DNA from: Perna viridis
Lineage: Eukaryota
Length of the DNA stretch: 64,000 nt
Assembly: GCA_037379345.1 (NCBI GenBank)
Contig: CM074519.1
Coordinates: 27,058,103-27,122,102 of the forward strand
Direction: 5' to 3'
Positions 1 through 27,563 of this stretch are shown piece by piece. The first letter of the stretch is position 1; each line of letters begins with the position of its first letter. Position numbers and translations under genes: made by a program. The notes beneath the pieces were generated by a model. The model saw only the letters and a program-made list of their open reading frames with translations, was not told the DNA's origin and searched no databases.

Positions 1-2378
1 CATCATTTGTAATTTTAAAATAACTGGCTGTAGAACTAAGTGGGCATGATATTTATGTTTATGTAGTGCAAGGCAATAAAGTTACTTTATGAAAGTATCT
101 TAATAACAACTTAAAAAGTTAACAAGTCAGAAAGTTTATAGTTTTAGAAAAAAATATATTTTGGCAATCATTGAAAATCCGTTTTACTATTGAAATGGCG
201 CAAATGCAATTAGTGTCATCCTACAGTCGTTTCATAATGAGAGAAATTTCGTGTTTTTTTTTTTTTTGTATTAAAGGAGGAATCTAAGTCTTCTCGATCT
301 TTGTCAAGCCAGGAAGAGAAGACAATTAAAACGTCTTTAACCCTACAAAATGAGAACATTTTATTACAGTTGACGAAGGTGTCAGTTTTCTCTCCATTCT
401 GCAATAATTTAATTTCCGTTCCAAAAATAAATCTGTGCAGCAAACAGATGCAGAAAGCTCCGTCGTAGTAGATTGTTACTGTAATATCATTACAAAAGGA
501 TTGTTCCCCTCGACACTTAACAGTATGATATCTATTTAAATGGGTACACGTTTCTATTTTGTAATTGTATATAGGGTTTCTTTTTACATGTTCAAAGCAA
601 ATCATATGGTTATATTTTGACATGGAATACTTTTGCACATATAAACATTAGTTTTTAACTTTTAATTGTTAAGATAACATATCTAATTTATGTAGGAATA
701 AATGCCACTACCAAACCAAATTAATGGTTTGTAAGCCATTTCATAATGAAATTCATCATAAAAGTAATATAAACAATACTCGATAATCTGCAATCAATTT
801 AACAAAAAAAAATCGTAAGAGTGAAATTGATGGTATTCCATAATATGACGTCCTAACTCATAAGTTTATGGTATTATAATCTAAAAACGTTTACAGTTAT
901 GATTTATGTAGACAAATAACATTGAAATAATATGTAATTCCCCGTAATTCTCCGTACCCCTACCCTTTTTATCCAAGCGTATATCTTAAAACAATGAAAG
1001 GTATAAGATTAAAGATAAATATATAGTACTGAGCTCTTCTTTTAACTTCCAATTTTATCTAAATGTAAACGAAATATTGTTTACAATATCGTAATATTAA
1101 ATATTTTTACTATTGTTATTACAAGTTGCTGTCCCACATAACTTTGGGCGTAATGGACCATGAGTAAGTAGTTTAAGCTTAAAAACGGAGTGTACCTGAA
1201 TAATCAGAAAAAAAAACATGAAATAGTTTTTAAATTATTTTATTCAATGAATCAAATAATTCAATACAAATTGAACAATTAAGCGATAATTCCCTATTGA
1301 TAGATGAGATCCTTTGAAATTGGTTGATGTACAATACAGTCGTATTTTATTGGAAAAAACCCTTTTTTTCTAAAATCTGGTCTTCGGGGTAACTAAATTT
1401 GACGGTAGCACGCTTCCTTGGAATGATTATTGGGTCCTTACATATGAAGTTGATAGGTTGTCAAATAACAGTTTCAATAGTAACGTCAATCTTCACGACT
1501 GATTTCATTTTATGTTTCACGAGACACCTTTTAGGTCTCAGTATCGTATAGATTTCTCCATTGGCTCTAATGCTAACTGTACATGTTTCAAATTTTTTTT
1601 AAAAATTGAAAAGTTGATTCAAATAAACTTTCATACATATATCATGTTTCAAGAAATGTTCAAATTTGATTTTAACTTAAAAAACCTAGACCAGTCCACG
1701 AAGATTGGAAAATCATCAAACCTTGAAGTCAAGAGCACATGTTTTCTACTTTCACTTTGGTGTTGTTGTTGTGCTGCAGTACTCCCTATCAACTAGATAT
1801 CCTTCCTCTTTCCTGTCTTTGAATCTGTAAATAAAAATCACACATTTTTTCTACTTGGATACATCTTTAAATATGGCCAAAATTCAAGTTCAAAATTAAA
1901 TGCAGCTGTTTAAAAAAAAATAAGAAAAAAAAGGAACTCTATTTTATTAGCCTCCATGTTTTGACGTACACCCGCTCAAGAATATCAATACGATACTGGT
2001 ATCCATTAGTCTTTGAAGTTGCTGTCTGTGGTTATATAGGGATATAATATCAATAACACCTACTTATTGGGCCTATGAGATTTATGCTGCAGTGTAGTAT
2101 ATTATTACGATTAGCATTGGTTCGGGCTATTTATTTTTTGCCCTGCTTTCAAAACACTGATCTTCAATTTCTAAACGTCAAGAAAAAGTAGATTATATAA
2201 AGAAACAGGATTTGGAACATGGACAAAAACAACACGTGAAGTTTAGAACGACTAGACATGCCCCAAGTCCAAGCTCGATCTGTCAATTCACTTCGATGTA
2301 TTCTCCAAGTTTCTCGCACGCTAAAGAACCCTGTTGTGGTATTCAATATGAATATGTACCTTTGCGCTCCACCACAGG

Positions 2379-2607
2379 AGGCTAAATTGCCCGAATATAT
2401 AGCTACCCCCATCCCTCTCTTTTTTTAGTGGCAATCAAAATTTGTCGACCCTATATATTATCCTTGTGTCCCATCTTTTTTTTCATTTCGACATCATCAT
2501 TTCATGTTCATTTTGTCATTCATTTCATGTTCATCGCCTGAATATACTGATATATTGCTGCTCGGGCGTTAAACCTCAATAATCAATCAATCAATCAATC
2601 AATCAAT
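2379..2607 (+). mobile_element. SINE/LINE 3' end with (AATC)n tail
   Basis: Ends ...atattgctgctcgggcgttaaacctcaat(aatc)n. Homologous copies at ~22082-22282, ~26073-26301 and a short one at ~32048-32092. Confidence 0.65.
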
Positions 2608-2939
2608 CCGATATATTTTCCTGATAATAACGATTATGTTAGATACAAGTGTATTACATAGAAAATGTGACATATCTATATATGTTGATATCGTTTATTC
2701 ATGTACTTATAATAATGTTTTAAAAATTAAATATTTATTCAACGAAATTACATCTACAATTAATAAGTGTACCGAAATTAACAACAACAACAAAAATAGA
2801 AATTATACACAACATTGGAAACAAATCTGTCACAAGAAACTGTAATTATGTATTGGTATGGTAAAAAATGTACATTATCGACAATACCTGCAATTGCATT
2901 GCTAACTCTGATGTCAAAGAATACATGGTTTAACAAAGA

Positions 2940-4176
2940 ATGATATATCTTATCATTGTTGTCATTATTGTGGTGTTTTTGCAGGAAACGCACTGTGACA
3001 TTCAGTCTAAACAACTTCTTTAGTTAAAGTCTCTACAATCTGGTAACTTTATTTTTATTCTAAGCACTAAATGTATGTATTACTATTATGACAATACATT
3101 TTCCGATACTGTGAAAGTACTTTAATTCGTGGATACCAATTTTCGTGGATTATTTAAAAACACAAATTCGTGGATTCTTAAATTCATGGTTTTGAGATTT
3201 TCAGTATACACATTAATGTAAATATCCTTTTCGTTGGGAACAAAATTTCGTGGTTTAGCCTGCCCACGAAAACCACGGAAATTGGTACCCCACGAACAAT
3301 AGGACTTTCACATTATGCATATTCTAACATATAAAACTACCAATGTAATGAATATTGCATGTCTAGATATGATGTAAAGTTAACGTGGTTCAAAAAGTAC
3401 AGTGTCATCAGCAGCATTGATGCCAAATGCATAGGAAGATAAAGAAAATGGTTGTCTGCAAGAGGTACACAATAAATATCTAAACAGGGGTGCAATTAAA
3501 GGGTTCTAACATGTGCAATACATAGAAAAAAATTAGTGTTTAAGGATATGATGTCTTAATTGTCATAAATTGACACAATTTCGCGCTATTCGATATCAAT
3601 TCGAGTTCGTTTCTGTTTAATTACAATATGTTTAACATGTATTTCATATTTTTGATACCAAGTTGCGGCGATTTTCTTTTGCGAAATTAGCGCAAAAAGT
3701 GTGTATCAGAATAAATAAGTATACTTCAACAAAGCAAACAACGTAAAAAAGTCATCTAATAAAATATTAATTCAGTTTAAGCTTGGGTAAATTAATCTGC
3801 TTATCTATTGAAAACGAGCAATTCAAAATTTGTAAAAAAAAAAAAAAAAAAAAAAAATCGAAAAAAAGGTATTTCAATTCTTTATTACTACGCACAAATA
3901 CGTAAGAATTGAATTTAAAAAAAAACCTCATTCCTCATCGATCGGGTATATTCCCCGTCAATTACTAAATCGGAATTATCAATGAATATTATCGAAATTA
4001 TATCAAATATGAATTTATTTAAATTATTAGCATTGGTTCAATAATATCACACTGAAAACAATCATGACTTGCTATTATATTCATTTCAGGTGTATCATTC
4101 TATGGTAAGGCTGCAAATTATATATTGTCGCTGTTGAAGAATGGTATTCACCCAAAATTTCCTCAGCAGTGTTTAG
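2940..4176 (+). pseudogene. FReD gene A, truncated: exon 1 2940-3042 (signal peptide, TAG at 3021-3023) and exon 2 4090-4176
   Basis: Exon 1 reads MIYLIIVVIIVVFLQETHCDIQSKQLL*LKSLQS followed by a GT donor. Exon 2 reads GVSFYGKAANYILSLLKNGIHPKFPQQCL, with an AG acceptor and gtaagt donor. Both are homologous to exons 1-2 of genes B, C and D. Confidence 0.85.
3109..3313. mobile_element. MITE with terminal inverted repeats flanked by TA
   Basis: ta-ctgtgaaagtact ... aggactttcacat-ta. Duplicate at ~26803-27008 and a diverged family member at ~56289-56463. Confidence 0.65.
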
Positions 4177-4859
4177 GTAAGTTTATACATAGAAACAATG
4201 CTAAGGCTTCCAAAGTAATAATTCATGGCAATTGGTGGAGGTGATTCATGTTGTAGACAATTATACTTAACAGAGGATGATTTTTTTTTTTGGTTCTCAT
4301 ATGAGTTTTTTATATATACTTTGTATACATATTAGGGTTATTTAGAATGACTTCTCCTGTACTTGCTCGGTACGCCGGGATTACCACAAGTGAGGACAAA
4401 ACAAATTTATTAGAAAATGCTGAGGCGCATGTTTGTGCAACAAAAACAATATCATGATACAAATACAATAATAATTCAACGTTTTTAGAAATTCAAGTTG
4501 CAACCCTGTGTAAAGAGGTTTGACAGACGTAATAAAACATTTCTGGATAGTTCTGGTTTCGACTAAGATTTGAAATGTTGTAAATATGTTAATGTAATGG
4601 ATTTCGAATTGAAGATGATTTGGTCAAACAAAAAAAAGCTAGACAATTACGATATAAACTATGGAATCAATAGTTTTTCATGTTAGATCAGGTTCATCAC
4701 AATCAAATCTTTGTCGTTTCTGAGTTTTTCATAGATATAAATTTCTCGGCTTTGGTATGGGTTTTAAAAGAAAACGTATCTACTTCTGTCCAAAATTGTC
4801 ATTTTCGTAGCGTTTAGTGCTTTCGTTCATTTATTTCTAACATTTAATGTGTTCAATAC

Positions 4860-5420
4860 CATTGTCACAATCTGAAGTTTTCCCTCTACAAACAGCTGAT
4901 CACGAACCAGTGAAATCTTTTCTCTTTCTTTGCATTTTTTTGTACTGGATAAAGTTTTTTTTTATTTTATTTTCGAACTTAGCTGAAAATTGTTCACTGA
5001 CCGAAAATTTGTTCCTTTCAATTTGTAACAGTTTTTCATGACTAACTGGTTATCTTTCATTGAAACAAATTTAGCGACGATTAGTCGATCGCAGTTATTC
5101 TTTTTGTTTCCAAAAGGGTGTACAATCATGAAACTTGCCTCAAAGTTTATAGTTGATATGATTTTTTGTCACGGCGCTCTCTTGGTCCTCCTCTGTTTCA
5201 ACTTTTATTCTCGACACAATGATATTATTATTCATAGGCCGCCATTGTAGCTCGCCTACATCACTTTCTAGACAGTTCAATTTCACATCAACTCTTTTCA
5301 TATCGACTTTAATTTCCCCGTGACTACTGCTTTATTGTAAAGATTTTATCATTGACACGTACAACGACACCCATCTGTTCTTCAACAAGTTTGTTTCTGT
5401 TATGCATATATTTGCATTTA
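4860..5420 (-). mobile_element. Degenerate non-LTR retrotransposon ORF1 (coiled coil + L1-ORF1-like RRM region); duplicate at ~28573-29130
   Basis: Frameshifted minus-strand pieces LQWR..NNIIVS, DRLIVAKFVSMKDNQLV, KLKGTNF..SEQF, KLYPV and SLVRDQLFVEGK resemble invertebrate LINE ORF1 proteins. Confidence 0.6.
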
Positions 5421-5799
5421 TTTTCAGTATTTTCACATTGAATCTAAAACTGAATCTTATTTAGCCACTAGCTGCATTATTCGTGAAGCTGCCCGTTCAA
5501 ATGTTTTGCTTCGATTCTGAAAATCTGATACAACAACTAAAAGAATTCAATATTGTGACATGTTTGCTCTCAAATTCCTTAATTTCCTACATTTGGATTT
5601 AAAACATTTCTTAGAACACTAAATTCACCAAAATGAACCATGAAGAACAATCGAATTGTCATGGATCGCGTTAGCAGCGGCAGTTGCGTCGTGAAATAAA
5701 CAGAAAAAAAGAGTTTTTTTTTAATTAAACATTATTTGTAGACCATAAATACCGTAAAACAATGTTCTATCATTCCGCATGGATTCCATTCCATTTATA

Positions 5800-7520
5800 C
5801 AGCAAGCTTCTTGGCCTGTAACATTACTATAAGTATATCCAGATTTTCGTAGGAGCGGATAAACATGAACGTCCTCAGACAACAGATCTTGGTGATCTAT
5901 AGACCCCTACATCTCTGATATAAAGCTAGACTATGACGTTATGTGTTAGATAAAATAGTACACTATAATTAGATCAGTACTTGTTTTACTTTTTGTAAAT
6001 AAATAGCAATTATGTAACAGGGGGAAACTGTAAGTTGTTTTTGACATTTTTCTAACTAACACTTTACGGCATTTAATAACCTCCTCTGAATGCTGTGAAT
6101 GAGCTCAAAATAGACAAATCAATTATTAGCATAATTGATAATCAAACAAAGATATTTACGGCTACGTCTGAATATTGTCAATTGGTCACTGTCTCGAGAC
6201 AAAAATTGAGGTTCGTCACGGGATATTTTATTTTGATTAGATGGACGAAGATAACATGTTTCTCAGTTTGTTCACAATTATTTCCGCTGTAGAAAATATT
6301 TTTATCAATAGAACTGGTGATGTCGGAATGGATGACGCACTTTCAGCTAGGATTTCTAAGTGAAGAAATCTTATCACCCCCCCCCCCGAATGTAAGAGGG
6401 TTAACATCTGTGGTCACACTATCCGCTGTTTAAGTTTGTATTTCAGAATCTTCTTCGTTGCAAGATTTTCCGATGACTGATGATAAAGAAATTCATTCGC
6501 ACTCGGCTCTTCTCTGACGTATTGTTTTCGGTTCATCGTCGTTATCTGTTGGAGTCTCATATTGTTTCAACGGCGGGATTTTATTTAATTTTGATTCAAT
6601 GTTACCTTCTGCCACTTAACGTCGTTAGTTTTTGTTTTTGTGCCATTCCCTTATATTGCGGGTCAATAATGCAGGCTAGAACGTGTGTGGTTTGTCCGAT
6701 ATTGCTGTCATTTGGCCTAATGGGACGCTTTAATTCATCCCCGATACATTTCTTTACTTTACTTACGAGTAATCGAACTAGCATCATCGGATGCTTTCAA
6801 CGTTTTCTTCAAAGAGTCCGCATACTTTGGGGTAAATCTGTAAGGCAAAGACTTTTGATTCAGTGCTCAAGTATTTTGTAACATCAGACAGATATTTCAG
6901 CACAAGGGATATGATCTACAAACCATGAATTTACGGTAACATATCTATCGGTTTTCGTAGTGTCAGTCAATACACGGCACTGTTCAACAAGACTTTCTAG
7001 CATAAGTTTAGTCGCGTTCCATCTTGTAACGTAACCATATCTTGGATCAGTTTATGTTGAGGCATAACACCTACTTTCTGTCGTTTTCATAATTCGGCTG
7101 TTAGTGTGCTTCAAATTTAGAAATGCCCAACTAGTTTTCGACACTTTGCAACAATCTTCCTTCGATACGGCGACGATTTCGATTGTGGGTTTAATACGTT
7201 ACTGAAGCATTGGCCATAACAGCCCAGATCATAGCATTCTGTGCATCTAGCCCCAGCACATTCCATATTTCTTGCGTTGCCATGGATCACAGTATATATT
7301 TTGCCTTCCATTCCGACTTAATTTTGACTGCAATGGTCTCCCCGTTATCATGGGTAAACAAAACATTTGATGTTATTTACTATTTATAGGTTAAATGACG
7401 TTCTGACGTTCTATTACTGACAAATTATGTCATTTGATGTGGATGTCCACTCATCGGTTGTCAACGAAACAAACTGCACGGATTGAAGATCCTGAACGAG
7501 ATTAAATATCTGTTCTTCTT
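5800..7520 (-). mobile_element. hAT DNA transposase relic (ZBED1/ZBED4-like), 5' truncated by the duplication breakpoint
   Basis: Minus-strand motifs in canonical hAT order: SLTTDEWTS (~7440-7470), KCRKLVGHF (~7120), VTRWNATKLMLE (~6995-7030) and LACIIDPQYK (~6650-6680). Many stops and frameshifts; ends approximate. Confidence 0.85.
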
Positions 7521-7857
7521 ACTCGATGGGTGTTTTTCTAGAAAATCAGAGGACGCTTAATCTACCGGTGTACGTAGTACATGCTCCCAGTTTTAAATGG
7601 AGTCCGAGTTTCTCATTTACTTTTGTTACTTCGTAGGCATTATTTTTGGTTATTTTGGTTATTAGTTTCGCGGTAAAATTGAAGATTTCATTAAAATGTT
7701 CAAATAATACTAATATTCAATTAACGGCTGTACATACTGGCAATACTTGATAAGAAAAAGTTTCATGAAAAAATTTGGTTCATACATATATTAAATTTCA
7801 AGACCCAGTAAAGACTGCTACAGTGTACATGTATTTTTTTTATCAAATCTTAGTTAG

Positions 7858-9069
7858 AATTGTCAACTTTGAATCAGAGGCTAGAGGTTGGAGAGTACTG
7901 CAAGTTTTGGATAAAATGTAATGGTAATCCTGCAGAACCGGGGTTAGTACATTATGTAATATACAATAATTTCATATTAAACGTGGACTTTGTGTGGGTA
8001 GAATTTTGCGACTTGCAATCTACCTACATTTTGCATGAACGATAAATGAAAAAAAAATCACCTGACATAATACATTGATATAAAGGTGGTCTTCGAAATG
8101 AACCTAAAATATACGTCATAGACTTTGCGCCTTTATTATTGTCTTGACATTTATAAAATAACACACTCGGTATATCAAATTGAATTCTACAAATTGTCAG
8201 ATAACAATATAAAATCTAAAGCTAACGTCTGGTTATCGGTAAAAAGCGTAAATTTTATATGCCTAAATTTACGATGATACCAGTTAGAATAATGTTATAA
8301 CGAAAGTTGCATAAGAATTGTTATTGGATTACTTATAGCTGAATTGGGAAACATCTATTTAGAAATGTTTGATGACAAACGATTAAAGCTTTGTCAGGTC
8401 AATAAATAAATAAGTTTTTTTTTTCTAAACTTATTTTTTGCCTTTTTTGTTCGTTTTTTAATGTAATTTTGGTCATCATAACATTTTTACAAACTACTTT
8501 AAATACGGAATTCAATGACTCTATCCTACTTGTTATTGCTTGCGAACATACATTATCCATGAAAGAAACTCTTTGTTTTGAAAACTTGATATGGTAAAGA
8601 AATGCTACGATACTACAAGTTGGTACCTTATAGGTTTGTTGACGGCAATACATGTATCTACCTAAAAATCAATTGAAAATAGTTTCGTGAAGTTATTAAA
8701 TTTTAATAGTTCAATGCCATATTGCATTGCCTTTTCTTCCATTTAAGTGGTTATGCCATCAATCTACAAGAGAAGCCGGATGATTCAACTACCATTTTGT
8801 TCCATTTTAATCCCAGAGGAGCATCTTCAAAAGTCGCAATTAATTCTTGCATCAAGAAAAAGTGGAAGAAAGAAGTAACAATATCCGGTATGGATGTGAA
8901 AGACATCTTCTATGACAACCGATATGAATTGAAACTTTACATCAAAGATCGCCGCCAGGTTGGCGTTTACGTCAACGATGTTTTGAAAACTGATTACGTC
9001 TGTCCGGAAGACATTACCGAAGCTAGATACGTCTGCTTCTCCGATGACGTCAGTATCCTTACTGATTAA
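7858..9069 (+). CDS. Galectin-like carbohydrate-recognition domain, two exons (7858 or 7854-7942; 8748-9069); no start exon of its own is visible
   Basis: The spliced frame is open: LSTLNQRLEVGEYCKFWIKCNGNPAEPG|GYAINLQEKPDDSTTILFHFNPRGASSKVAINSCIKKKWKKEV...YVND...SILTD*. It carries the galectin signature INL...FHFNPR...VxxNS...WxxE. The phase-2 intron is GT..AG, and AATAAA lies at 9100-9105. Confidence 0.8.
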
Positions 9070-10594
9070 ATATTGGCTGACTGTACGTTTATGTTTTGTA
9101 ATAAATTATTCATTATTTGAACTGCTTTATTACGTAATAGTTCTCTCTCTAGGTAATAACATAAGTATGTAAAGTAAACTCGTATAGTATTGGTTGCAAA
9201 CATGAAGCTGAAATACAAACTTATTTACTGATTACTCGTTTGTGTATTTTTGTTTACTCCTACACCCTTGTACATGTAGTGACATTCTATGTTTAGATTA
9301 ACGAAATAATCATGCAGTAGATCAATGTTTTATTTCCATTTTTAAACCCATCAAACTTATTGCTTATCGGATTTTATTCATTCACAATGTAACGGTGCAA
9401 CTGGTGGAGTAGGACATACTGTTGTGACTCCCAGTATTACACTGTAAGGGGTGTTCATATTTCACATGCTTTAGTCTTTTTGTGTTCTTTCTTAATTGCT
9501 TTACCTTCAGATTTTTACGATGTCTCTGAATCGCTCTGTTTCGATACTTCGGTATTGTTTTGCAGATTCGTTGATACAAAGGTGTAAATTCCTCTATTAT
9601 TGCTAATAGGGACTTCAGAGTCCATGTAATCAACAGAAGTATTTCAAGACATTGGGGAAAGTAAAAAAATAAATTGCTTACACACTGGTAGAATAGTTCT
9701 TATTGTTCTGTAACAGATGGTTTCAGATACCTGCTCAAAAACCTAAAATAGGCGCAATCAAAATATTTTGTATAGATGACATATAGTCCTGTTTGCCATT
9801 TTTTTAAGATTTTAAGTCAATGACCCCAGCAACTTAAAATCAGCAGCGGCAAGTTCGATCACGAAAACAATGAAGTCGAAATTCCAATAGTGTAACCAAG
9901 TTACGGTATTTATCTACAATGTAGCTGGAGAAACAACATCTTCCACATGTAGCAGACTGGTTATAAAATCATTTATAAATAAATGATTGGTACTTTTGTA
10001 TTTTGCAACTTAATTTATTTTCTGTTAGTTAGAGACACTGATTTGTGAATGAACATCACAAACAATGTAAACAAATGCATGATTATTTTCAACCAGCTAC
10101 AATGAACTAGTCTGTATACATGACTTGGGATAAAACAACTTTTGATGAGATACATTTGATTTATTTTGTTCAAACAGACAATTGATTATTTGATATTAGT
10201 CTGTTGGCGACAGAGTCTAAAGCATCTCAAAAAAGTATGTATCTGAAGCTTTCTGCTCGAAGTATCGTGCATTGCGAAAATATGTTAAGCTATGACAGTT
10301 AACAGCGGAAGTCGTTTTGTGCTACTTCCAGTTTAGTGTTATTTACGAAGTACACGTATATCACAATGGTATGTTTAAAATTTGACTGAGACCCATAGCA
10401 TAGCAAATTCTCGCATTAAGCCGTATTGCGGTATTTCATCATATCATGCCAGTTTGTCTTTAAAAAATGAACAAATGATAAATGTAGTAGATACAATTTT
10501 CCCCCAGCAGTTATATATGCGAGCAACCAAAAAGGAAAGAATCGTTCAAACTTTCGAATACATAAAAAAAATAAACAACACAAAGTAGAAAATA

Positions 10595-10799
10595 TTACGA
10601 TAGCCTATTGAGCACATTTTCGTAAACTAGAAAATTCACAAATGATAGCTTTTTGAGAAAAAAAATCTCGATCTCCATAATGCTTGTTTGCATAATAAAA
10701 AAAAATATTTTGCGTTATTACCCGTAAGTTTTGCGGTTTAACGCGTCACGCAAAAAATATGTTTTAGTCTACGAAAATGAGGTCAATGGGCTTTTGTAA
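10595..10799. mobile_element. MITE with ~38-bp imperfect terminal inverted repeats
   Basis: ttacgatagcctattgagcacattttcgtaaactag ... ttagtctacgaaaatgaggtcaatgggcttttgtaa. Confidence 0.6.
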
Positions 10800-11447
10800 A
10801 ATATCCCTTCAAAAGGAATACATAGAAAAAAAACTTATACAATAGTAACGAATTATCGATATAGAATAAGAATTTCTTTCAAGATGAACTTCGAATCATT
10901 AGCGACAGTTATGAAATACAACTACGGGAAATGTATACAGACGATAAATTAATTTTACACCAGAAGCAACATTATTCTGTTACACAATACACTCATTATA
11001 TCAAAATAAAAGTATTGTTTCAGAAACTACATAGTTTCTGTAAGGCAATAGAAACAGTGAGTTCAACAACAATGATATACATGTACCTTATCTCTGCTGC
11101 TGCTGCTACAGTTCGAAAACGTTTTAAAGTGAAATTAACAAAATTAACAAAATTGTCGGCCAAAAGGTACTTCAACACCCAGGACTCACCCCAGGGTAAC
11201 ATCTATGTTGACGATAGCATATGACGTAGAAATTTCAATTTTATGCATCTATATTATTGACTCTTAGGTGTACTATTATGGAATCTATTGCCCCCCCCCC
11301 CCCACACACACACCCTAGTATATACTGTTAATGTTTTCAGCAAATTTAAAATTGGTATTTCAGGTAAGTGTGTTTAGTGTTGTTTTTATAATTAGATCCA
11401 TTTTTCAATGCAATAAATGACTTTCCATTAACTAAATAAATGTTCAA

Positions 11448-11527
11448 GTAATACACATAACCACAGGATTACGTCACAAGGAAGTTATGAACTCAGATTT
11501 GATTTACGAGCTTAAGAAGGCATTACA
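11448..11527 (+). pseudogene. Orphan 5' half of a FReD exon 5
   Basis: Reads NTHNHRITSQGSYELRFDLRA*EGIT versus gene B exon 5 NKHINKLTSRGSYELRFDLRDWDDNT. Shares agttatgaactcagatttga exactly; the acceptor is mutated (caa). Confidence 0.8.
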
Positions 11528-11548
11528 TGAATCATCTTCCAAATATAC

Positions 11549-12632
11549 CGAAGAAAATATTTTCATAATGATGGAAGTTGAATCGACAACATATTTCTCA
11601 GTGTGGTGGACGCCTTTTTCAACAAACGTCGACATTTCTATGGGAACAGAATGCGATATCATAGCACGCTTAATCTTCCTGTTCCATTACAGTTGGTCAC
11701 CCTTGATAAAACAAAACGTACGAAAGAATTCTAGTAGACACTACGGGGTTTGCATTGTCAATTCCAAATAATAACAGGGAGGATTTAAATTCTAGTCTTT
11801 TAGTTTTGACTTGTTTTAAACTTTTAATTTTTTTCTTTTTGTATTTTGCTTATTTTTAAATATTACCTGCGCTTGTTGAAAATTTAACTTTGCCTTGAAT
11901 TCAAAGTAATAACATCTTCGTCTAAAGAGTATCCATCCAGCATCACTTTTGATAAATCCACCTTCAAGACACCAGTTAAAATTGACAAAGCATACATACT
12001 TACACAAGTTTCATATCAGATATGAACTCTTTTGGTATTTTTAAAATATTAATTGTATATTATTTTTATAATTATCAGTATTTTTTTACTTCGTTTTAAC
12101 ATACGACTAAAAAATTCTATACATGCTCGTTTATACAATTTAAAATCAAATGTAGGTTTGAAAGTACCCTGTTTACCTTCATCTCTTTTTTTTGCCTTTT
12201 ATGCCATCTCTGCCGGTCAGTCCCCTCGCCCCCTTTGGTCCCTGGTCTCCAACGTTTCATTTCGGACCCTGAAGTCTAGTTTGTCCTTCGACACCTTGAT
12301 TTCTAACATTGCCTTTTTCCCTGGATCACCCTCATCACCTTTATATCCAGTAAGTCCAATTATTTATCTACTTCCCGTGGACCCTTTGGCACCCGAATCA
12401 CCCCTAGGACCAGTATCCTACTTCAATCCTTTTAAACCGGGTAAACCAACAAAGCCTGGTTGTCCTCGTTCTCCTTTTATCCCTTGCAAGCCAGCATCTC
12501 TTGGATTACCCCGAGTACCGGGTTCTCCTTTTTGACCTTTCATATTTTTGTAACCTCCGTCCTTAAATTCCTTTTTTGTTTCTTCTTTGTTCATTTTACC
12601 AGGAACGTTAACATCCAAAGCTCATTTCCACC
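11549..12632 (-). pseudogene. Collectin-like pseudogene: collagen exon 12168-12632, C-type lectin exon ~11867-11973, possible second lectin exon 11549-11637
   Basis: About 40 Gly-X-Y triplets (GQKGEPGTRGNP..GLQGIKGERGQPGFVGLPGLKGLK*DTGPRGDSGAKGST...GDQGPKGARGLTGRDGIKG) with Gly-position stops and frameshifts. These are followed by KSDAGWILFRRRCYYFEFKAKLNFQQAQ|gt, typical of a long-form CTLD N-terminus (CxxGW..F...CY.F...A). The third exon (KCRRLL...MLSI...ENIF) is weak. Confidence 0.75.
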
Positions 12633-12634
12633 CT

Positions 12635-12752
12635 AAGATAAAACTGAATGTAAAACAATGTTACGATCACATTGAGACATTACAATAAATAAAATGTAAG
12701 ATAAAACTGAATGTAAAACAATGTTACGATCACATTGAGACATTAAAATAAA
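12635..12752. repeat. 63-bp period tandem duplication next to the collagen exon acceptor
   Basis: aagataaaactgaatgtaaaacaatgttacgatcacattgagacatta occurs at 12635 and 12698. Confidence 0.9.
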
Positions 12753-13215
12753 ATTTAAGATACATGTTTTGACATTTTTGTGTGTTTAATGTGTGCATGA
12801 AACGTTATCAATTGATAATTGATATTGTCATCAAATGTCAGTACGTATTTTCCAATTAAAGCGTTCATAACCTGTGGCTCTTACAGGAAATAGTGCTATG
12901 AAAACTATTCATACCGTTTTGGCAAATATTTTATTGAAAATAAACATATCTAAAGATGCATTCAAATTCAAAATTCGTTTTCGTTATTCCCAATAGCCAA
13001 TTTTTTTTTCAGATTTGTATCCTATAGCAGTAATCAAAATGTCGTTTATTTCCAGCGTATTGACATCATTTAGTTACTTACATTCCCCGAACCCCTTTTA
13101 CGGAAACATCATTGGAGAATACATTATATACCTCAACCACATTTAATAATTACATATGCGTAATTAGGAAGTTAAATAAAAGCGATTTAAAAAGATTTAA
13201 AAATTCACCACTTAA

Positions 13216-13482
13216 CAGACACTGTGAAGTCAGCCTAATATTTATACCTACAAATAGAAATCGATGGAAAAAGAATCGGTTGACCGAACTAAATGACAAA
13301 CGCGACGACTTTACATTCAATAATGTCAAATTTCCTTTCATCTGTGGCAAAATCCCTTCAGTACCTGCGTATGATGTGTATAACTCATACGTTATGCCAG
13401 AGCTTGCCGTAACTACGCAGACTTTTGTACCGCGCTAGACTTTTTACAATTATGCTTTTGTAACAGGGTTATGTTGCTACAA
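13216..13482 (+). mobile_element. Penelope-like retroelement RT C-terminal fragment
   Basis: LNDKRDDFTFNNVKFPFICGKIPSVPAY; homologous to 34823-35150 and 18730-19255. Confidence 0.75.
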
Positions 13483-14563
13483 AAAAAAATGGATTCAGTT
13501 ACTCGAATTGCATGAGTTTTACTACTTAAGATAGAAACAATGACAAATATTGATCCACTAACTGTGAACCCAAGGTTGGGACATGGTGTTATCATTTCTA
13601 GAGAAGTACAACTAACCGACAGAAACTGGGTTTTATGGGATATAAGAATATAAATTATGAATAAATAATAAGGAAGCTCAATTGTTCGCTTAATTTTGTT
13701 GAATCATATCAAAATATCCACATACATGAAAATTCCTAATTGCCTCTTCTTACTAATCAATTCAATGATTATATGAAAGGCTACACTTTGGTTTAATTGC
13801 ACATCATAGACAAGAAAGTCGTTGCAATGTATCCGATTTTGTAAGGTAAAGTAATAGTTTCAAATGACTTTATTAAATTGAAAATATAAAATATAAAATT
13901 TTATACGACAATCGATATGATACTGCCACGCAATAGAATAATTATGAATAGTAATAATGTCGATAAAAAGTGTTTAATTTTCATATGAGCCAAAGCAAAG
14001 ACATTTCCTCAACAATGAAAACCTTATCCTTGCTGCAGTTATCGGAATAGTTATTCAGCAGATGCGCTGCACTATGACGTCAAAACAACGTACTCTATTA
14101 CAGTCTTCACAATCTGGTGACTATCTTTATGACTGATATTTTTAAATAACTAAACTAATACATGGTTGCTTTGAAAATGAGTGAACCATTAAACCATGCA
14201 AGATTTATCATAAAATCTTAGTAGTGTAATTTTCTATAAATCATTTAAAATTTTCAATAAAACTTTTAAAATACTATGGGTTTAAGGCTATTTTCTTTGA
14301 TTGCATCGAAAAAAGAATTTGACAAGATTTCTTTTTGAGATCATTAGTAGGGACACGCGTGTGTTTTACTACAATTGAGATTCAAGGTTGTACATTACAA
14401 ATATGTTTTTTCTGATGTTGTCTGAATTCCTGTTGTTAAAAGCATTTGTTCAATTCACCTGATGAGGGCACCGTAAATGTTTAGTAACATTTATTTATTT
14501 TAATCACAATCTGCAAAAATAAACAAATTAAGTAGATGTCTTTAAAAGAATCATGCAAAATCT

Positions 14564-14735
14564 GAAAGAGTAATCAAGGGAACCAAGGTTATAGCGGTAA
14601 TCAAAAGAATGTAATCCAGGGACAAAGACCAGACATGGAAAACAGGCACACACAACAAAGAACACAAAGCAACTAAAATCATACATACAAAGTAACAAAA
14701 GTAAATGAGCAACTCGGACTCCACTAAAAACTGGT
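14564..14735 (-). mobile_element. Penelope-like family 3' terminal fragment
   Basis: gaaagagtaatcaagggaaccaag...aatgagcaactcggactccactaaaaactgg; matches the ends of the RT-bearing copies at 18433 and 34541. Confidence 0.75.
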
Positions 14736-17700
14736 GATACACCCCAAAAAGGCTACATATTTTTATTTTTGTAATTAAGTTGTTTTATGGGTCTATACTA
14801 TGAAATGTGTAATTATTCATTCAAGTCTGCCTGCTCTTAGAAGATAATTAACATTGAAAATCCAGTAGATTCTATTGTATTTCAGCGTCATTTACAGAGT
14901 TATCTCCCTTAATTTTAAAATCTACAGAGCATTCGGTATAATTTTTATCTCCTAAAAGAACATGTTATATGAAAAACCACATATTAATTTCTGTTTACTA
15001 TGACATTTCAAAAAAATATCAAAAATAAAAATATGTAGGCTTTTTACCCATGAATCACATTTTGCATGATCCTTAGATGGAGTGCTTCTTAAATGAAAAT
15101 GGTAGAATTTAATTCAAACGTTTTTGCAGGTATACTGCATATCAAATCAAAATTGTGTAATTTTGATTTTTATTTCATTTAATCTTTCTAGTACATCTTT
15201 GCTGCATTTACAATGACATTCTGGCTATGTGTAATAATAAACCTTTACCTTCTCATATCACTGTTATTGTATTTCTGCTTTTATACCCGACGCAAAGAAG
15301 TTGTGAGGTTATCATTTTGTTGACCCGTCTATGTATCCCTCTGTCCGTCCGTCTATCCGGGCGTCCGTCCCAACTTTTTGCTTTTTGAATAGCGCCTTCA
15401 TTTTTATCTATTTCATCAAAACTTTGATAAATGGTAAGTAGTACTAAAAATCTTGTATGGAACTAATTTTCACAGACTTTGATTACCAGGAGAAGCACTT
15501 GTAGTGCTTGTCGCTTTGATAGGACCTTCATTCAAGTTCTTTCCAACATTGGTGAATCTGGATTGATTTTCACAGGCAACTGGTAAAAAATACCATTTTT
15601 TATAACCGCCAAACAAAGTGTCGAGACATTATGAGATACCCTTCGAATAGTGGCGTGTCCGTCCCTGACGGTTTCCAGATGATAAATTTAGAAGACATAA
15701 AAGAATCTTTGCATAACTATTTAGTATAATAAATTACAGATCAAATACGACCCTCAGATTTTCCACATATTTTTACACAAATTTTACAACCATTGTAAGT
15801 TGTTTTAACTCCACCCACGATTCTCTGGATGAATTAAAGTTATCTTTAAGAAATGTAAAACTTAATTATTTCGGAAATGTGGAGCCGAGATCTAATTTTC
15901 ATTATTTGCCGCCATATTTTTTCATTCATTGTATCGATTAATTGGATTTATCCTTCTTGGAATATGGTTTTTTTTAGATAAATTTGAATGCTATAAAAGA
16001 TGAAAATATAATGAAAAGTCCTTTTACATACTCTATTTCCATTGGTGGTGGGCGGGGCTTATTAAAAAAAACCTATGATTTAGGCTGGCAGCCTGAATAG
16101 CGTCTCTATTTTTGACATATTTCCTTTAAATTATGGTGGAAAGTTAGTAAAACAAACTAGGTCGGGATTGTGATTATTTTATTTGCATAGATGGAATAAA
16201 GTTTTGCGAAAGAGTGCAAATGTGTGGGGATGGGGTATTGTGAGATAGTTTTCTGAGGTTCTTTAATTACCCACTTCAAACTAACATAGAATCATTGAAA
16301 GGACTATATCATACCACGTGTCTATCCATTAAAACATTTCTATACAGTAAGAAGATCGTGTCATGTCATAGTTGATTTACTGATAATATATTTGCTGATT
16401 GATAAAAGACTAAGCTTGAATTTGTTCACATTTAAGGAAATGCAAAATAATTTTAATTTTACGGCTTTAGTAGACTTAAAGGCTACAAATTAACATTTAT
16501 CAAAAACAATTTAAAAAAAAACTATTTTGGTTGGTAGTAATTTCAAAAATAAACCGTTGTTTACTGGGTATATTACTTGCATGGACGGCGGACACCTTAT
16601 GGAACATGGATCATGCAAAATACATCCATGTACCAAAACTGAGAATGCAATTTATAATTGTTTTTTTTACACACTGTACTTGTTTCATGATTATTTGTCC
16701 TGATGTATTTCTGAATTAATGTTTTTTCTTCCATTTTGTCAACTGCGTTGGACAACATTTAGACTTATTTAACTAATTATCTGTGTAAGTTGGACCTAGA
16801 GAAAAGCAGAATAGTATTAGATGTCATTAATATCCAAGAGTTATTGAATAATACATATCCAATACTGTTGATGGCTTTGACTTATGAAAATCAATTTTAT
16901 TTGGGAACACTTTTGCCAAATTATAACTTCTCGAATTTGTAGGTGTTGTGTTCTACGGAATGCAGCAACTTATATCATGTCGCTACTGAAGAAGGACCTC
17001 AACTCAAATCCTACATCCAAGTGTTTAGGTAGGGAATTACTACTTAAACGGTTAAACTTATGTTGATTGTAGCCTGGATAAACCGATAACCTGCCTAAAT
17101 AAAACACTTTTTAAGTCCCTTCATTTTAGTGTCAATGTATGTAGAATCTTGGTAACCAACCACGTGTCAAATCTGTGCAAACTCAACAGTCTTAAAAAAG
17201 TTTGGCTAGGTCATGTTTCGTAAATCCCTACTGAATTGGAAAAAAAATACCGAAACTTCAATCATTGGACAATTCAGATAAATTCATAGCCTATAAGTGA
17301 AAATAGAAACTACAAAAAAATGATCCAAGAAGACAACTATCACCGCAAAAAAGCAAATATGGACACTTTTTTGTCCTTGGTGAAAATTAACAGTTACCCC
17401 AAAAAGACAAGAGAAGACAATTTGTGGTCCTTGAAACTGTCACCACAAAAAGCAGAGATAAGACGCTTTGGTCTTTTATTAGACTGCCACCATCAAATGC
17501 AGGGATAGACACTTTTTGTCCCTTGATGAGAGATTTGAAGGACCCTTTAGTACTAGCAAAAACTGGCCATGAAAGTTGAACACAAATTGAAAGAAACTAT
17601 ACATCATTTGTACCCACTGTTTTGTACATATTTTTAGTTAGGTTACTCTTACTCCTACAAACCTTATAGTGGAGATAATGGGGAAAATACTTTGATATCA

Positions 17701-18432
17701 AACCAATATCCTGCAAATAGGCATATATTTCCTTTTTTCATAGCTTAAATACAACCAAGCTCATTTTTATACCCATTTCTATGGAAATAAGAATAGTATG
17801 CCGAGAAAACATCCATATTAGTTGAGTCTGTTTTTTGTAAAATCTGTAGTTCAAAGCAATATGATTCGACGTAAATAAGGAAAAATGTATTAGGTTCTGC
17901 AGAGCCTGATTGACATCAACCAGTCAGACTGTATGTCCAGTCTTTCAATTTTTTACACCATACTACTACAGGGAGTATCTTAGCTTCATTGTACAACTAA
18001 ATGATTGGTGATGGTAAAGTAGTTACCATTCTTGTTTATTTCATTCTAGTGGCTACGCTATCTACCATAAGGGTTTTTTTCTTCGCGTTTCGTGTGATAT
18101 ATTTTAACTTCATTTCAGATGGTAAACCGATCGACTGTGTCGACTTACCAAAGAGTTGTCCCAGTGGTGTCTATAAAATTTTCCTAAGATTTTCACGTGG
18201 TTTTAATGTTTACTCTGAAATGGAGAAGGATGGAGGCGGATGGACGGTAAGAACCATTTATTATCTTAGTAATTTTAGATGAAGGGTGTGTTTACATGTT
18301 TTCTCTACTTTTGTTTGTTTAATAGACAATACAGCTATTGTATATCACATTCTAAATGTTAAGCCTTTCATTCCATCTTTAATCTTGAATTTTGGTACAG
18401 TTTCTATTTTGTATGCTTCTTTACATTTGGTT

Positions 18433-19255
18433 GAAAGAGTAATCAAAGGGACCAAGATTATAGCGGAGATCAAAAGAATGTAATGGAGAGACAGAAAAAG
18501 AAAGACCAGACATGGAAAATAGACACACACAACAAAGAACATCAAATGACAAATATAATACAAACAAAATGACAAAAGTAAATGAGCAACTCGGACTCCA
18601 CTAAAAACTTGGAGCATGTACCAGGTGCACCGATAGGGTAAGCGTTCTCATAAACTTCATAAAAACACCCACCGAGTTGCTCACAAAAAGTCAAGTTCAT
18701 GGCAATCTAAATAGGAAAGGAAAACTGTGACACATTGAACAAATCAGCTCTCATGGTGCAGATGGCTACACCATAACGATCTGTGAGTTAATGATGATGA
18801 CCATAACACTTCTATAGTGATGACTTCATTCTTGTAGTAACATAACCCTGTTCTAGAAGCCTAATTGTTAGAAGTCTACCGCGATACAAAAAGTCTGCGT
18901 AGCTACGCCAAGCTCTGGCACATAAAAGTATGAGTTGTGATATGAAAACTCCATACACAGGTGCTGAAGGAATGTTGCCAAAAGGAAAGGAAAGTTGACA
19001 ATACGGAATTAAAAGTCATCGCGTTCGTCAGTTTTCCTAAACCTTTCATCACTAAGTGTAAATCAAGGTATGGGTCTGACTTCACAGTGTCTGTAGTGTA
19101 AATTACCTCAAGTGTTTTAGGGGTAGATGCGATGTATAAAATCACCGAAACTAAGGATTGTTAACGATAATACGTCATATATATAGCGGAAACTGAGATT
19201 TAAGGATATAGCTAAACGACAATTCTTCCTCTGGTTCAGATCAGCTATGAAGACA
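18433..19255 (-). mobile_element. 5'-truncated Penelope-like retroelement in intron 3 of gene B
   Basis: Minus strand reads SFRYIYDVLSL (degenerate RYIDD), TTDTVKSDPYLDLHL, followed by the shared 3' terminus. Confidence 0.8.
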
Positions 19256-21338
19256 ACAACCTTAAAAATGAATTAACTTTACATTAAACCTGCAATTTAG
19301 CTTTGCTGAACATTTTTTATGACAATGGAATCTGAAGGACACTTGAAAAAGTCAAAAACATTTTCAGCATAACATTGTACATTCTTTTTTCGTATATGAT
19401 ACAATTTAAAATCATGCATGGAGTGGCTGACTCTTCTAGCTTAAATACTTGGCTACACGGGATGTTTTAAAAAGGTGTCCATGCAAACACCTGCAGAAGG
19501 TGACACGTGGCATCTTTTTTTAAATTGTCACTCAATCCATATCACAAATGCATCCTTTCACAAAATTAAATTGATTTTTGTGATATGGATTGAGTAAAAG
19601 TTTTAAGAAAAAAAGTGTCATTTGCCACCCACTGCTTGGTTTTTTTAAATATCTGCCACTCTCAAGTACACAGTTAACACTTTATCTTGTTTTGTAATTA
19701 GTCGTCTTTAATCTTTAATTTCATTTTCCCCTATATAGATGACGTATTATCGCTAGCGTTAGTTTTAAAACAACATTTTGCATCAAAAGAGTTATCTCAT
19801 TTTTTCAACTGATTTCAGTGCTTTCTTTGGAATTTATTTCTCTTAAATGGTTGTAGTTATAAGCTTTATTAGGGAACAATAAAATCCTTTACTGATTCAT
19901 CCATCGTCGATTTAATAATATTTTTATAGTATTTGATATACATATGTTATACAAACATTACACTGGATAAAAAAAAACAGTTGGATTACATTTACCAGTG
20001 CCTGATTTTTACAATTAAAATGTTAAAGTACTACTAATTATAAAACAAATGGATGTAGTTAGCTGTGTAATTGAGAGGGGCAGATGTTTTAAAAACTTTG
20101 AAATGGCGAATGGTATATCGTCGAAATTCTACTGAAAGTGCAAAATCCATGATTAACCTTAAAGGCTATATTTAAAATTGATATACATTTTATACAGATA
20201 ATACAGAGACGAACAAATGGGTACACTGATTTTTACCGTGACTGGAATCCATACAAAAATGGTTTCGGTGATTTGGCTTGGTATGTTTTATATAATATTT
20301 TCAAAATCAGTACTAGACAATTCTTTGCAACAAACAAAACAAACAAGAAAAAGCAATCGTGACGACATACATCTAGTTTAGATAAATGTTACGTTAATCC
20401 CTGACATTGATTATATCTCTGCATTTATAAATGTATGTACAGGTGTATACACAGTAATAGAGGCGAAGGAATTCGATGGGAAATTCAAATACGCATCCAT
20501 TTGCGTTTCCCGTACATTTGGCTAGAAGATATTTATTCTGATTTATGTTACCAAGTACTTTGGAACACATTTTTATTCAACTTGATTAATAAAATGTATG
20601 GTTCTTAATTACTGACCTTATAAATATACTAAATTACATATGTAAAGAGATAATACTTTAAAAATGATTATACTCTAAAAGATATGTTTTTTTTTCTTTC
20701 ATTCAAGTCATTACATGTTTCTGTGATTTTATTAATTTCAGGGAACAAACATATCAACAAACTTACATCACGGGGCAGTTATGAACTCAGATTTGACTTA
20801 AGAGATTGGGATGACAATACAGCTTTTGCAAAAAACAAACATTTCGTGGTTGGACGTGAATCTTCAAACTTTGTTTTGAGCGTAAGAAGATACCATGGTT
20901 CGGCAGGTACATGAATGTATATATTGTGGACGTTTGGGTCAATGTTACTTATGTTGACCTAAAAATCCCTGTACGGTATTCACTGGCCCACAAGTAACAT
21001 TTGTTCCTATTTCGTTATTTTGCTCTGAGTACTTTATATATATATATATATATTTTTTTTTGGATTAGGATTTTTTTAGTTATTTTGTTTAAATACTTCT
21101 CTTAAGACTTTATTTATTGAAACACGTGTGCAACATATCTAAAATATCTATCTAAGATTAGTATTGTTCATACATATAATGGGCGTTTCTAAGCTTTCTT
21201 ACAATATTAAGTGTTACTCATACTTCCACACAAACTGAAATGTATGCTTGTTGATTACAAGTCTTGCTGACAACCCGTTTTCTGTCAAGATACTCATGAA
21301 TTAAAAATGGGTAACGCATCACAACAGGATCTGCTGAC

Positions 21339-22320
21339 TTTTTAGCTCACCTGGCCAAAGGACAGGTGAGCTATTGCCATCACTTGGCGTCCGTCGTCGT
21401 CGTTAACATTTATACAAAACTCTTCTCCTTTAAAACAACTTGACTAATTAGAACCAAACTTGGTATAAATGTTTTTGGGGTATCCTGCATAGAACTGATG
21501 TGGGGATTTTTGATTCGTTGAAAAACATGGCCGCCGTTACTAAAAATACAATAAAGGGGTCAGACAGCAGATTTTTGCATATATATCTCCAAAACCATTT
21601 GGTTTAGCGAAATTCTGGCTAGGTAAAAGTGTTTAGCATGATAAGATCTATCTCTGCTCAAATGTTGGTTGTAATCCGTTTAGCCATGTTTGCGTTGTTG
21701 CCCTTTTTCAACGATTATTGCTGTTTTTAATGTTATTTCTTTCTCCTGACACTACTTGACCAATTGAAACCTTATTTGGTATGAATGTTCCTTGGGGTAT
21801 CCTGCATAGAACTGATGTGATGATTTTAGATTCCTTGGAAAACATGGCAGTTGTTACTAAAAATAGAACAAAGGGGTCAGACAGCAGATTTTTGCATATA
21901 TCTCCACAACCGTTAAGTTCAGCCAAATTCTTTCAATAGCTGAAATGATCCTTATCATTAGGACTACAAAAGATAAAAGAGATAAAAGTTGTCAGATGAC
22001 TCCTTGTAAGAGTTATTACCTTGAAAGGGGTAAAACAACTTTTTCAAAGTTTTCAGTCAATATCTTGAAATCTATGACAGATGGCTAAATTGCCATACCC
22101 TACCCATCCCTCCGATTTTTTAGTGGCAATAAAATTTGTTCGACCCTATTATTCTTTTGTCCCATTCTTTTTTTTTCATTTCATCATCATTTCATGTTCA
22201 TTTTATCATCCTTTTCATGTTCATCGCCAGAATATACTGAAATATTGCTGCTCGGACGTTAAACACCAACAAACAAAATCAACCAGGTGAGCGATTCAGG
22301 TTCCTGGGAGCCTCTTGTTT
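21339..22320 (+). mobile_element. Non-autonomous Helentron/HINE-like element with internal tandem repeat and nested SINE 3' end
   Basis: Starts in a T-run with agctcacctggcc..caggtgagct, then (gtc)n, a duplicated internal block (~21440-21620 and ~21755-21930), and ends caggtgagcgattcagg..gagcctcttgttt. Confidence 0.7.
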
Positions 22321-26600: not shown

Positions 26601-27522
26601 TCTGATGTCAAAGAATACATGGTTTAACAAAGAATGATATATCTTATCATTGTTGTCATTATTGTGGTGTTTTTGCAGGAAACGCACTGTGACATTCAGT
26701 CTAAACAACTTCTTTAGTTAAAGTCTCTACAATCTGGTAACTTTATTTTTATTCTAAGCACTAAATGTATGTATTACTATTATGACAATACATTTTCCGA
26801 TACTGTGAAAGTACTTTAATTCGTGGATACCAATTTTCGTGGATTATTTAAAAAACACAAATTCGTGGATTCTTAAATTCATGGTTTTGAGATTTTCAGT
26901 ATACACATTAATGTAAATATCCTTTTCGTTGGGAACAAAATTTCGTGGTTTAGCCTGCCCACGAAAACCACGGAAATTGGTACCCCACGAACAATAGGAC
27001 TTTCACATTATGCATATTCTAACATATAAAACTACCAATGTAATGAATATTGCATGTCTAGATATGATGTAAAGTTAACGTGGTTCAAAAAGTACAGTGT
27101 CATTAGCAGCATTGATGCCAAATGCATAGGAAGATAAAGAAAATGGTTGTCTGCAAGAGGTACACAATAAATATCTAAACAGAGGTGCAATTAAAGGGTT
27201 CTAACATGTGCAATGCATAGAAAAAAATTAGTGTTTAAGGGTATGATGTCTTAATTGTCATAAATTGACACAATTTCGCGCTATTCGATATCAATTCGAG
27301 TTCGTTTCTGTTTAATTACAATATGTTTAACATGTATTTCATATTTTTGATACCAAGTTGCGGCGATTTTCTTTTGCGAAATTAGCGCAAAAAGTGTGTA
27401 TCAGAATAAATAAGTATACTTCAACAAAGCAAACAACGTAAAAAAGTCATCTAATAAAATATTAATTCAGTTTAAGCTTGGGTAAATTAATCTGCTTATC
27501 TATTGAAAACGAGCAATTCAAA

Positions 27523-27563
<41 letters not shown>

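Follow-up and report, generated by a model that had tools for sequence, protein, structure and literature searches.

Does this locus encode a newly formed secreted lectin? In the window, which is the whole 64,000-nucleotide stretch of Perna viridis contig CM074519.1 that was analyzed (positions 27,058,103 to 27,122,102, forward strand), exons 1 and 2 of a FReD gene lie ahead of a galectin that has lost its own first exon, and an earlier note had read this arrangement as a possible exon-shuffled lectin. The part of that reading which stands is the rearrangement itself, a true joint with FReD 5' exons upstream of a headless galectin on the same strand, but the making of a secreted galectin does not. 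The fusion is structurally real and non-productive, an ordinary by-product of duplication and no new secreted lectin. On direct reading of the sequence all observations of the note held: where the exons lie, TAG at 3021, a phase-1 donor at 4176, the breakpoint at 7663, acceptors at 7854 and 7858 and an intact galectin part. The features are as follows.

1..7663, + strand: tail of unit 1, with FReD gene B from its promoter through exons 1-2 into intron 2, most of which is included (identity to 23659-31371)
2940..3042, + strand: FReD exon 1 (copy 1), with a hydrophobic start resembling a signal peptide, ATG at 2940, phase 1 end, donor GT at 3043
4090..4176, + strand: FReD exon 2 (linker), ending ...TGT TTA G in phase 1 before GTAAGT at 4177; paralogous exons at 16962-17033, 27816-27887 and 38643-38741 (tblastn)
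7521..7667, no strand: multi-copy repeat fragment in FReD intron 2, holding the right breakpoint; 80-82% matches at 18544-18677, 34663-34775 and 45364-45491
7660..7663, no strand: duplication joint TATT, where the alignments overlap
7660..31371, + strand: tandem unit 2, with the headless galectin, a collagen-containing gene (- strand), FReD gene A and the 5' region of FReD gene B (alignment, tblastn, Pfam)
7664..7853, + strand: the 190 nt at the 3' end of galectin intron 1, kept in the window copy and identical to L007:4029-4218 of the upstream copy
7854..7942, + strand: galectin exon 2, native acceptor 7854, phase 0; the RNA contig match starts at 7854
8748..9069, + strand: galectin exon 3, the bulk of the carbohydrate-recognition domain (PF00337), stop TAA at 9067-9069
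26634..35661, + strand: FReD gene B, exon 1 at 26634-26736 (same TAG) and exon 2 at 27796-27882 (tblastn and Pfam)
32521-32694, 33219-33299, 33904-34083 and 35383-35661, + strand: fibrinogen exons of FReD gene B (tblastn and Pfam)

Alignment of the window together with 50 kb upstream revealed a head-to-tail duplication of ~23.64 kb, in which the unit -15975..7663 is matched by 7660..31371 at 98.6-99.2% identity. Window positions 1-7663 align to 23659-31371 at 98.8-98.9% and the match ends exactly at 7663/31371, while extension upstream placed the start of the duplication beyond the window edge at -15975 (C9:27042128), giving a complete tandem unit which also holds a second, complete galectin gene upstream of the window. 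No further unit copies were found within the 50 kb upstream, so that there is one tandem pair only. Unit 1 ends and unit 2 starts with a common 4-bp microhomology, TATT (7660..7663); comparison of the breakpoints found no identity rightward of 7663 and these four bases only leftward of 7664. The breakpoints are both in introns, of two different genes on the same strand, the left one within galectin intron 1 and the right one within intron 2 of FReD gene B. The repeat fragment at 7521-7667, over which DNA word depth rises to ~190,000 (bin 7535-7734), was considered as a driver of the duplication via homologous recombination and was rejected because the upstream partner is without the repeat and only 4 bp are common to both.

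Fibrinogen exons 3-6 (PF00147, 32521-35661) follow the second copy of FReD exons 1-2 alone, as had been noted earlier and as tblastn and Pfam now place them. PF00147 matched at 32521-32694 (2.9e-6), 33904-34083 (3e-11) and 35383-35661 (8.6e-22), and by paralogy these exons are presumably spliced to exons 1-2 of FReD gene B. Exon 1 encodes a signal-like peptide and exon 2 a linker of 29 residues; no Pfam family was found on either peptide, and the two together have room for ~63 residues. The TAG at 3021-3023 is in frame, read directly as codon 28 of exon 1, and is present in both unit copies. This lesion, which the earlier note had recorded for both copies, extends beyond the assembly to an independent DNA sample X3 (record 8) and to a third sample X12 (record 1), with 0 other letters. 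Where exon 1 has TAG, its paralogue at 14023-14115 reads a sense codon.

On the galectin side, both exons (7854/7858-7942 and 8748-9069) are open, and an AATAAA at 9100-9105 lies past the stop. Exon 3 matched PF00337 with an E value of 9.1e-11 (41.8 bits where the cut-off is 22.1, covering profile positions 30-127 of 132); exons were searched singly, and exon 2 at 27 aa is too short for a Pfam score of its own. A PDB search matched galectins, the best being 5nld (E 1.6e-4 over 42 residues). No relatives were returned by a word-based protein search with the exon-3 frame 8710-9066 (119 aa) at 0.55-1.75x query length, which shows no more than that the protein is either divergent or not represented there. 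The sugar-contact motifs HFNPR, VAIN and W-K-K-E are seen, and the arginine of W-G-x-E-x-R is replaced by threonine (WKKEVT).

The parent of this galectin, together with its first exon, was located by a genome search 23,636 bp upstream, where exon 3 is 100% identical; there is one other genomic paralogue only, on C14, at 35% identity. The native coding exon 1 contains 9 nt (ATG CCA TAT followed by GTAAGT, L007:3755-3765, coding part 3755-3763) and lies 261 bp 5' of the left breakpoint, and this exon and the remainder of intron 1 have stayed with the upstream copy only. An RNA contig (X12 record 7, with 1567 nt at a depth of 1805) aligns to 7854-7941 and 8747-8930, and its loose end before 7854 is identical to L007:3736-3763, that is, native exon 1 joined to 7854. 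The joint 7941>8747 was found in 20 + 10 raw RNA reads (30) plus one contig, with read strand fitting a + strand gene. We considered whether the galectin might have a first exon of its own inside 7664-7853, and rejected this since the stretch is the tail of the parent's intron 1 and is skipped by the RNA contig. The native N-terminus is Met-Pro-Tyr followed by LELSTLNQ, and the next residues, LELSTLNQRLEVG, are not hydrophobic when judged by eye; on this reading the native galectin appears to be without a signal peptide. The working galectin, 139 residues encoded by exons 1-3, is the upstream copy, with its own promoter and a three-codon first exon (Met-Pro-Tyr).

The fusion has two acceptors to splice to, four nucleotides apart. 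The AG at 7852-53 gives an exon start at 7854 in phase 0, and the AG at 7856-57 gives a start at 7858 in phase 1 (G+AA, Glu), which is the sole acceptor in frame with the FReD donor at 4176. A caveat of the earlier note, that 7854 may be the native acceptor and would break the frame, proved correct, as the X12 contig joins native exon 1 to this position. Computed splicing from 4176 to 7854 gives (G)TT, then RIVNFESEARGWRVLQVLDKM, then a stop, a frameshift which terminates after 21 codons. Given the TAG at 3021 and the frameshift at the native acceptor, there is no open reading frame across the fusion. The 4176>7858 junction suggested earlier was sought in RNA along with 4176>7854, and neither joint was found at a 1% threshold in two RNA-seq runs and one transcriptome. 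RNA depth over FReD exon 2 was 0 (bins 3935-4334) in runs X21 and X22, and zero in the transcriptome too; about one fifth of each run was covered, and the FReD promoter could be active in particular tissues or upon infection. The fusion is non-productive because FReD-B exon 1 already had a nonsense codon, because the acceptor used by the galectin (7854, phase 0) mismatches the FReD donor (phase 1), and because its FReD-B 5' exons show no transcription in the RNA examined. The earlier note had named in advance, as outcomes counting against a productive fusion, galectin transcripts with their own first exon or only the 7854 acceptor, or a fixed TAG together with the absence of a chimeric transcript; native exon 1 joined to 7854 is what was found, and the samples examined show the TAG and no chimeric transcript.

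A newborn secreted galectin would arise if the FReD promoter, a 4176 to 7858 splice and a TAG-free allele came together to give a single protein with a signal peptide, a linker and a galectin domain. Strand, architecture and intronic breakpoints suit a fusion transcript, the 7858 acceptor restores the frame and the galectin part is intact. Against this, native splicing takes 7854 and so frameshifts the fusion, the TAG is carried by both copies and by X3 and X12, FReD exon 2 is at zero depth with the fusion joint absent at the 1% threshold, and three independent favorable events are required. We regard this explanation as highly improbable. A version restricted to some animals, in which a segregating duplication, firing of the FReD-B promoter in a particular tissue or upon immune challenge, some use of 7858 and TAG-free alleles would together give a signal-peptide galectin, has an equally slim chance of being correct; if true, it would be a lectin-head swap caught while polymorphic.

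A separate matter is whether the joint exists in animals. In the samples examined, the FReD|galectin joint did not turn up outside the assembly, and a 38-nt word spanning it had no exact match in metagenome contigs, where animal DNA is rare. A long DNA contig from another individual (X3 record 15) begins matching exactly at 7660 and its other 2635 nt have no match in 2935-7659; X3 therefore carries the ancestral upstream|galectin joint. The differences between the unit copies (~1-1.4%, with small indels) segregate in the population, and X3 is a mosaic of both copies. An age for the duplication based on this 1-1.4% divergence was rejected, and dating was dropped, because the copy differences are segregating variants. 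An uncollapsed haplotype pair would give the same pattern of copy differences.

The two 23.6-kb units might accordingly be haplotypes of a single-copy locus laid head to tail by the assembler, in which case the joint at 7663 and the headless galectin would be present in no animal. The copy differences are in the allelic range and are shared piecemeal with the single haplotype that X3 has across the 5' region of the FReD gene, no second diverged copy turns up in X3 beside its ancestral joint, and the X12 transcript has native exon 1 joined to allele A at 7878, an allele which the assembly puts in the downstream, headless copy. However, the joint is seamless, the window and the 50 kb before it are free of Ns, and its partners share 4 bp only. 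Since overlap-based assemblers connect reads through the long stretches that they share, one would look for a falsely joined pair of haplotypes within homologous sequence or at a gap, and not at a sharp, non-homologous point inside two introns. Unequal exchange between different homologues would likewise produce copies with allelic differences from the outset. We consider an artefact unlikely, and infer that the joint is present in the animal and not in the assembly alone.

The joint is probably the novel joint of a recent, likely polymorphic head-to-tail duplication of ~23.64 kb in a lectin cluster, giving a non-productive fusion. The duplicated segment would begin midway through intron 1 of a prototype galectin gene with three exons and end midway through intron 2 of FReD gene B, taking in the collagen-containing gene as well as FReD gene A, and its end would have been joined to its start via the 4-bp microhomology. 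The result would be the promoter and exons 1-2 of FReD-B ahead of galectin exons 2-3, the architecture of a fusion gene. The sequence at the breakpoints points to non-homologous or microhomology-mediated joining as the mode of origin.

This duplication offers a resolved example of how, in a fast-evolving invertebrate immune-lectin cluster, tandem duplication brings together the exons of unrelated lectin genes, with the parent gene 23.6 kb away as a built-in control. It also illustrates why most such joints fail: the phases do not match, the donor gene is dead and the promoter is silent. Annotators should not turn the galectin copy in the window into a model of a secreted FReD-galectin, and should regard the region as a possible copy-number variant or false duplication.

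The snail VIgL proteins (FREP, CREP and GREP of Biomphalaria) are defined as a group by N-terminal Ig-superfamily domains (PMC5433772, PMC10875847). The Perna arrangement resembles them in the idea of a secreted N-terminal module carrying a fibrinogen, C-type lectin or galectin head, and differs in having a signal-like peptide and a 29-residue linker without a Pfam domain, and in that the fusion is not expressed in the RNA examined. The analogy drawn earlier with FREP/CREP/GREP does not extend to membership, as no Ig-superfamily domain is found on the two FReD exons.

In vertebrate galectin-1 genes the first coding exon is tiny, as it is in the Perna galectin. With the prototype single-domain galectins (chicken 5nld, vertebrate galectin-1/-2) it has in common PF00337, HFNPR, V.N, W..E and the lack of a signal peptide as read by eye. 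It differs in being very divergent and in having threonine for the arginine of W-G-x-E-x-R, and sugar binding is putative.

Chimeric gene structures at tandem duplication joints were described in a population survey of Drosophila yakuba (PMC5460883). Compared with such chimeras, the Perna joint differs in that no fusion transcript was found, the phases are mismatched at the native acceptor, the donor carries a nonsense codon and the duplication is known from the assembly alone. It is like them in its same-strand intronic breakpoints, in fusing 5' exons from the downstream gene with 3' exons from the upstream one, and in leaving both parents intact.

The 5' end of FReD gene B, as present in its first copy, was read directly as two exons on the plus strand:

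2940-3042 (+), FReD exon 1, starting with ATG at 2940 and ending in phase 1
4090-4176 (+), FReD exon 2, ending TGT TTA G/GTAAGT in phase 1

An earlier note had proposed that these exons, set before a galectin lacking its own first exon, could form a secreted galectin caught at birth, and its coordinates (the exons, the TAG at 3021, donor 4176, breakpoint 7663 and acceptors 7854 and 7858) were exact on direct reading. Exon 1 codes for a hydrophobic signal-like start in which codon 28 is an in-frame TAG (3021-3023). Neither exon matched any Pfam domain, and all they code for is a short linker behind a signal-like peptide. Downstream of the second copy lie fibrinogen exons (PF00147) at 32521-35661; the first copy is followed by none, in line with their reported absence after 7663.

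Comparison of 50 kb of upstream sequence with the window (negative positions lie upstream) revealed a single, simple head-to-tail duplication, with unit 1 at -15975 to 7663 and unit 2 at 7660 to 31371 (98.6-99.2% identity); within it window 1-7663 aligns to 23659-31371 at 98.8-98.9%, the match ending at 7663/31371. As this was the one pair of units found in the window and 50 kb upstream, 7663 is the sole novel joint in this assembly, where unit end meets unit start. The partners share only TATT (7660-7663) with no longer homology, and the right breakpoint lies within a multi-copy repeat fragment (7521-7667) missing from the left partner, which points to a joint of non-homologous or microhomology type. 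No Ns were found in the window or the 50 kb upstream. Since both breakpoints are intronic (galectin intron 1, FReD-B intron 2) and both genes lie on the plus strand, the joint has the architecture of a fusion gene; the left breakpoint falls 190 nt 5' of the galectin acceptor, so the window galectin copy is truly headless.

The searches took each exon as a separate query. Both galectin exons of this copy (ending at 7942; 8748-9069) are open, and the larger matches PF00337 (E 9e-11, profile positions 30-127 of 132) and also PDB galectins, so the galectin part is free of lesions as described. The HFNPR, V.N and W..E motifs are present with the last Arg of W..E.R replaced by Thr, and the protein is best described as a divergent prototype galectin. 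When the assembly that holds the window was searched in six frames, a second galectin exon 3, 100% identical, turned up 23,636 bp upstream, and the only other genomic relative was a paralogue on another chromosome (35% identical). That paralogue (G000:C14:5936900-5940205, minus strand; PF00337 2.2e-7) likewise has its domain split over two exons, and the two probably make up a small, divergent lineage-specific galectin pair. The sole coding difference between the galectin copies is at 7878, AGG (Arg) in the window and GGG (Gly) upstream.

The parent gene was thereby found together with its first exon. In L007, the upstream stretch holding the parent copy, ATG CCA TAT is followed by GTAAGT (L007:3755-3765, the three codons at 3755-3763) 261 bp 5' of the left breakpoint, and is a three-codon coding first exon ending in phase 0. 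An RNA contig from a third sample (X12 record 7, 1567 nt, depth ~1800) aligns to 7854-7941 and 8747-8930, the intervening intron being spliced out, and its 30 letters 5' of 7854 are identical to L007:3734-3763, ending in ATGCCATAT. The native mRNA therefore runs from its own exon 1 through acceptor 7854 to exon 3, giving a protein of ~139 residues that lacks a signal peptide and starts Met-Pro-Tyr then LELSTLNQ. The intron 2 joint 7941>8747 (GT..AG) was crossed by 20 and 10 raw reads in RNA-seq runs X21 and X22, on the strand expected for a plus-strand gene.

The fusion is non-productive for three reasons: phase, the TAG in exon 1 and expression. Two AGs 4 bases apart give acceptors 7854 (phase 0) and 7858 (phase 1), and the phase 1 FReD donor at 4176 joined to the acceptor in use, 7854, yields 21 wrong codons and then TAA; only the AG at 7856-57, left unused by galectin, would restore the frame. 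The suspicion that 7854 was the native acceptor was thus well founded. The TAG is carried by both copies, as already observed, and two contigs that span the site agree with it at every letter, one of DNA from another individual (X3 record 8) and one from the third sample (X12 record 1); a paralogous exon (14023-14115) has a sense codon there. On this basis the donor gene was disabled before the duplication took place. RNA depth on FReD exon 2 was zero in both raw runs, and no joint leaving 4176, including 4176 to 7858, was reported even at a 1% threshold, compared with 30 reads across galectin's own intron. These RNA results cover about one fifth of each of the two runs and one transcriptome assembly, so fusion transcripts specific to a tissue or challenge may still occur. 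With the native first exon and 7854 in use, the TAG shared across samples and no chimeric joint seen, all of them results which the earlier note had listed as grounds for refutation, the proposal of a newborn secreted galectin was not upheld: the juxtaposition is a rearrangement joint with a fusion layout that is non-productive.

A transcribed, very high-copy repeat lies in FReD intron 1 (3105-3316; also 26869-27011 and 56323-56466), with a DNA word depth of ~76,000; RNA reads in the hundreds leave it on both sides into unlike sequence. Whatever RNA depth seems to lie around FReD exon 1 comes entirely from this repeat.

The weakest point of the case is the reality of the duplication. The only long DNA contig of the independent individual at the joint (X3 record 15, 3905 nt) begins its match exactly at 7660 and its remaining 2635 nt match nothing in 2935-7659, so it carries the ancestral upstream-galectin joint. 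Over the FReD 5' region X3 has one unbroken haplotype that is a mosaic of both copies; of the 14 differing sites in record 14, 7 carry the letter of copy 2 and 7 that of copy 1, and there are 2 private changes. In an X12 transcript, native exon 1 is spliced to an exon 2 with A (Arg) at 7878, an allele that in the assembly sits in the headless copy. The 1-1.4% difference between copies is accordingly standing polymorphism and not divergence since duplication. Such polymorphism would also fit if the assembler had wrongly placed two haplotypes head to tail, a reading we consider rather unlikely, as the sharp, gapless 4-bp joint would be unlike overlap-based assembly errors. The same joint leads us to favour, as the probable origin, a non-homologous, unequal exchange involving two distinct homologues, which would have produced a young and probably polymorphic duplication.

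The surrounding cluster is heavily decayed, and the unit also holds a collagen-containing gene:

11444-11509 and 13488-13592 (+), isolated FReD exon fragments between galectin and FReD gene A, the latter with in-frame stops
11549-12632 (-), collagen-containing gene inside the duplicated unit (ORF 12421-12621, minus strand, PF01391, 1.2e-6)
14014-14118 (+), exon-1-like piece 5' of FReD gene A, its ATG out of the conserved reading frame
38643-43608 (+), FReD gene C, a third FReD gene and a pseudogene, downstream of gene B

In gene C in-frame stops lie in exon 39126-39263 and the last exon (43363-43608), and the isolated fragments are relics of older cluster rearrangements. Read from its ATG, the exon-1-like piece meets a stop after 11 codons; gene A may be disabled too or use another first exon. 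ORF 11819-12010 (minus strand), resembling a C-type lectin domain start, had no Pfam match at E<=0.01. Elsewhere, a 33-bp minisatellite at 58896-60852 (~60 units, GC skew -0.43) is open for 522 plus-strand codons with an 11-residue repeat (KPCITHKPAIT-like) and is possibly coding. Minus-strand open frames at 51469-53505 (679 aa) and 63474-63998 (175 aa) contain Cys/His-rich zinc-finger-like stretches and have no relation to the lectin cluster.

The suggested likeness to snail FREP, CREP and GREP proteins did not hold. What defines snail GREPs is their Ig-superfamily domains at the N-terminus (PMC5433772, PMC10875847), whereas the FReD 5' exons supply a signal-like peptide and short linker, so the fusion is, judged by domain content, no relative of GREPs. 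The layout at the tandem-duplication joint is a true fusion architecture, and the fusion was dead on arrival. In architecture the joint has the textbook form of tandem-duplication fusion genes (PMC5460883), a known process of which it offers an ordinary example, if a neatly resolved one.
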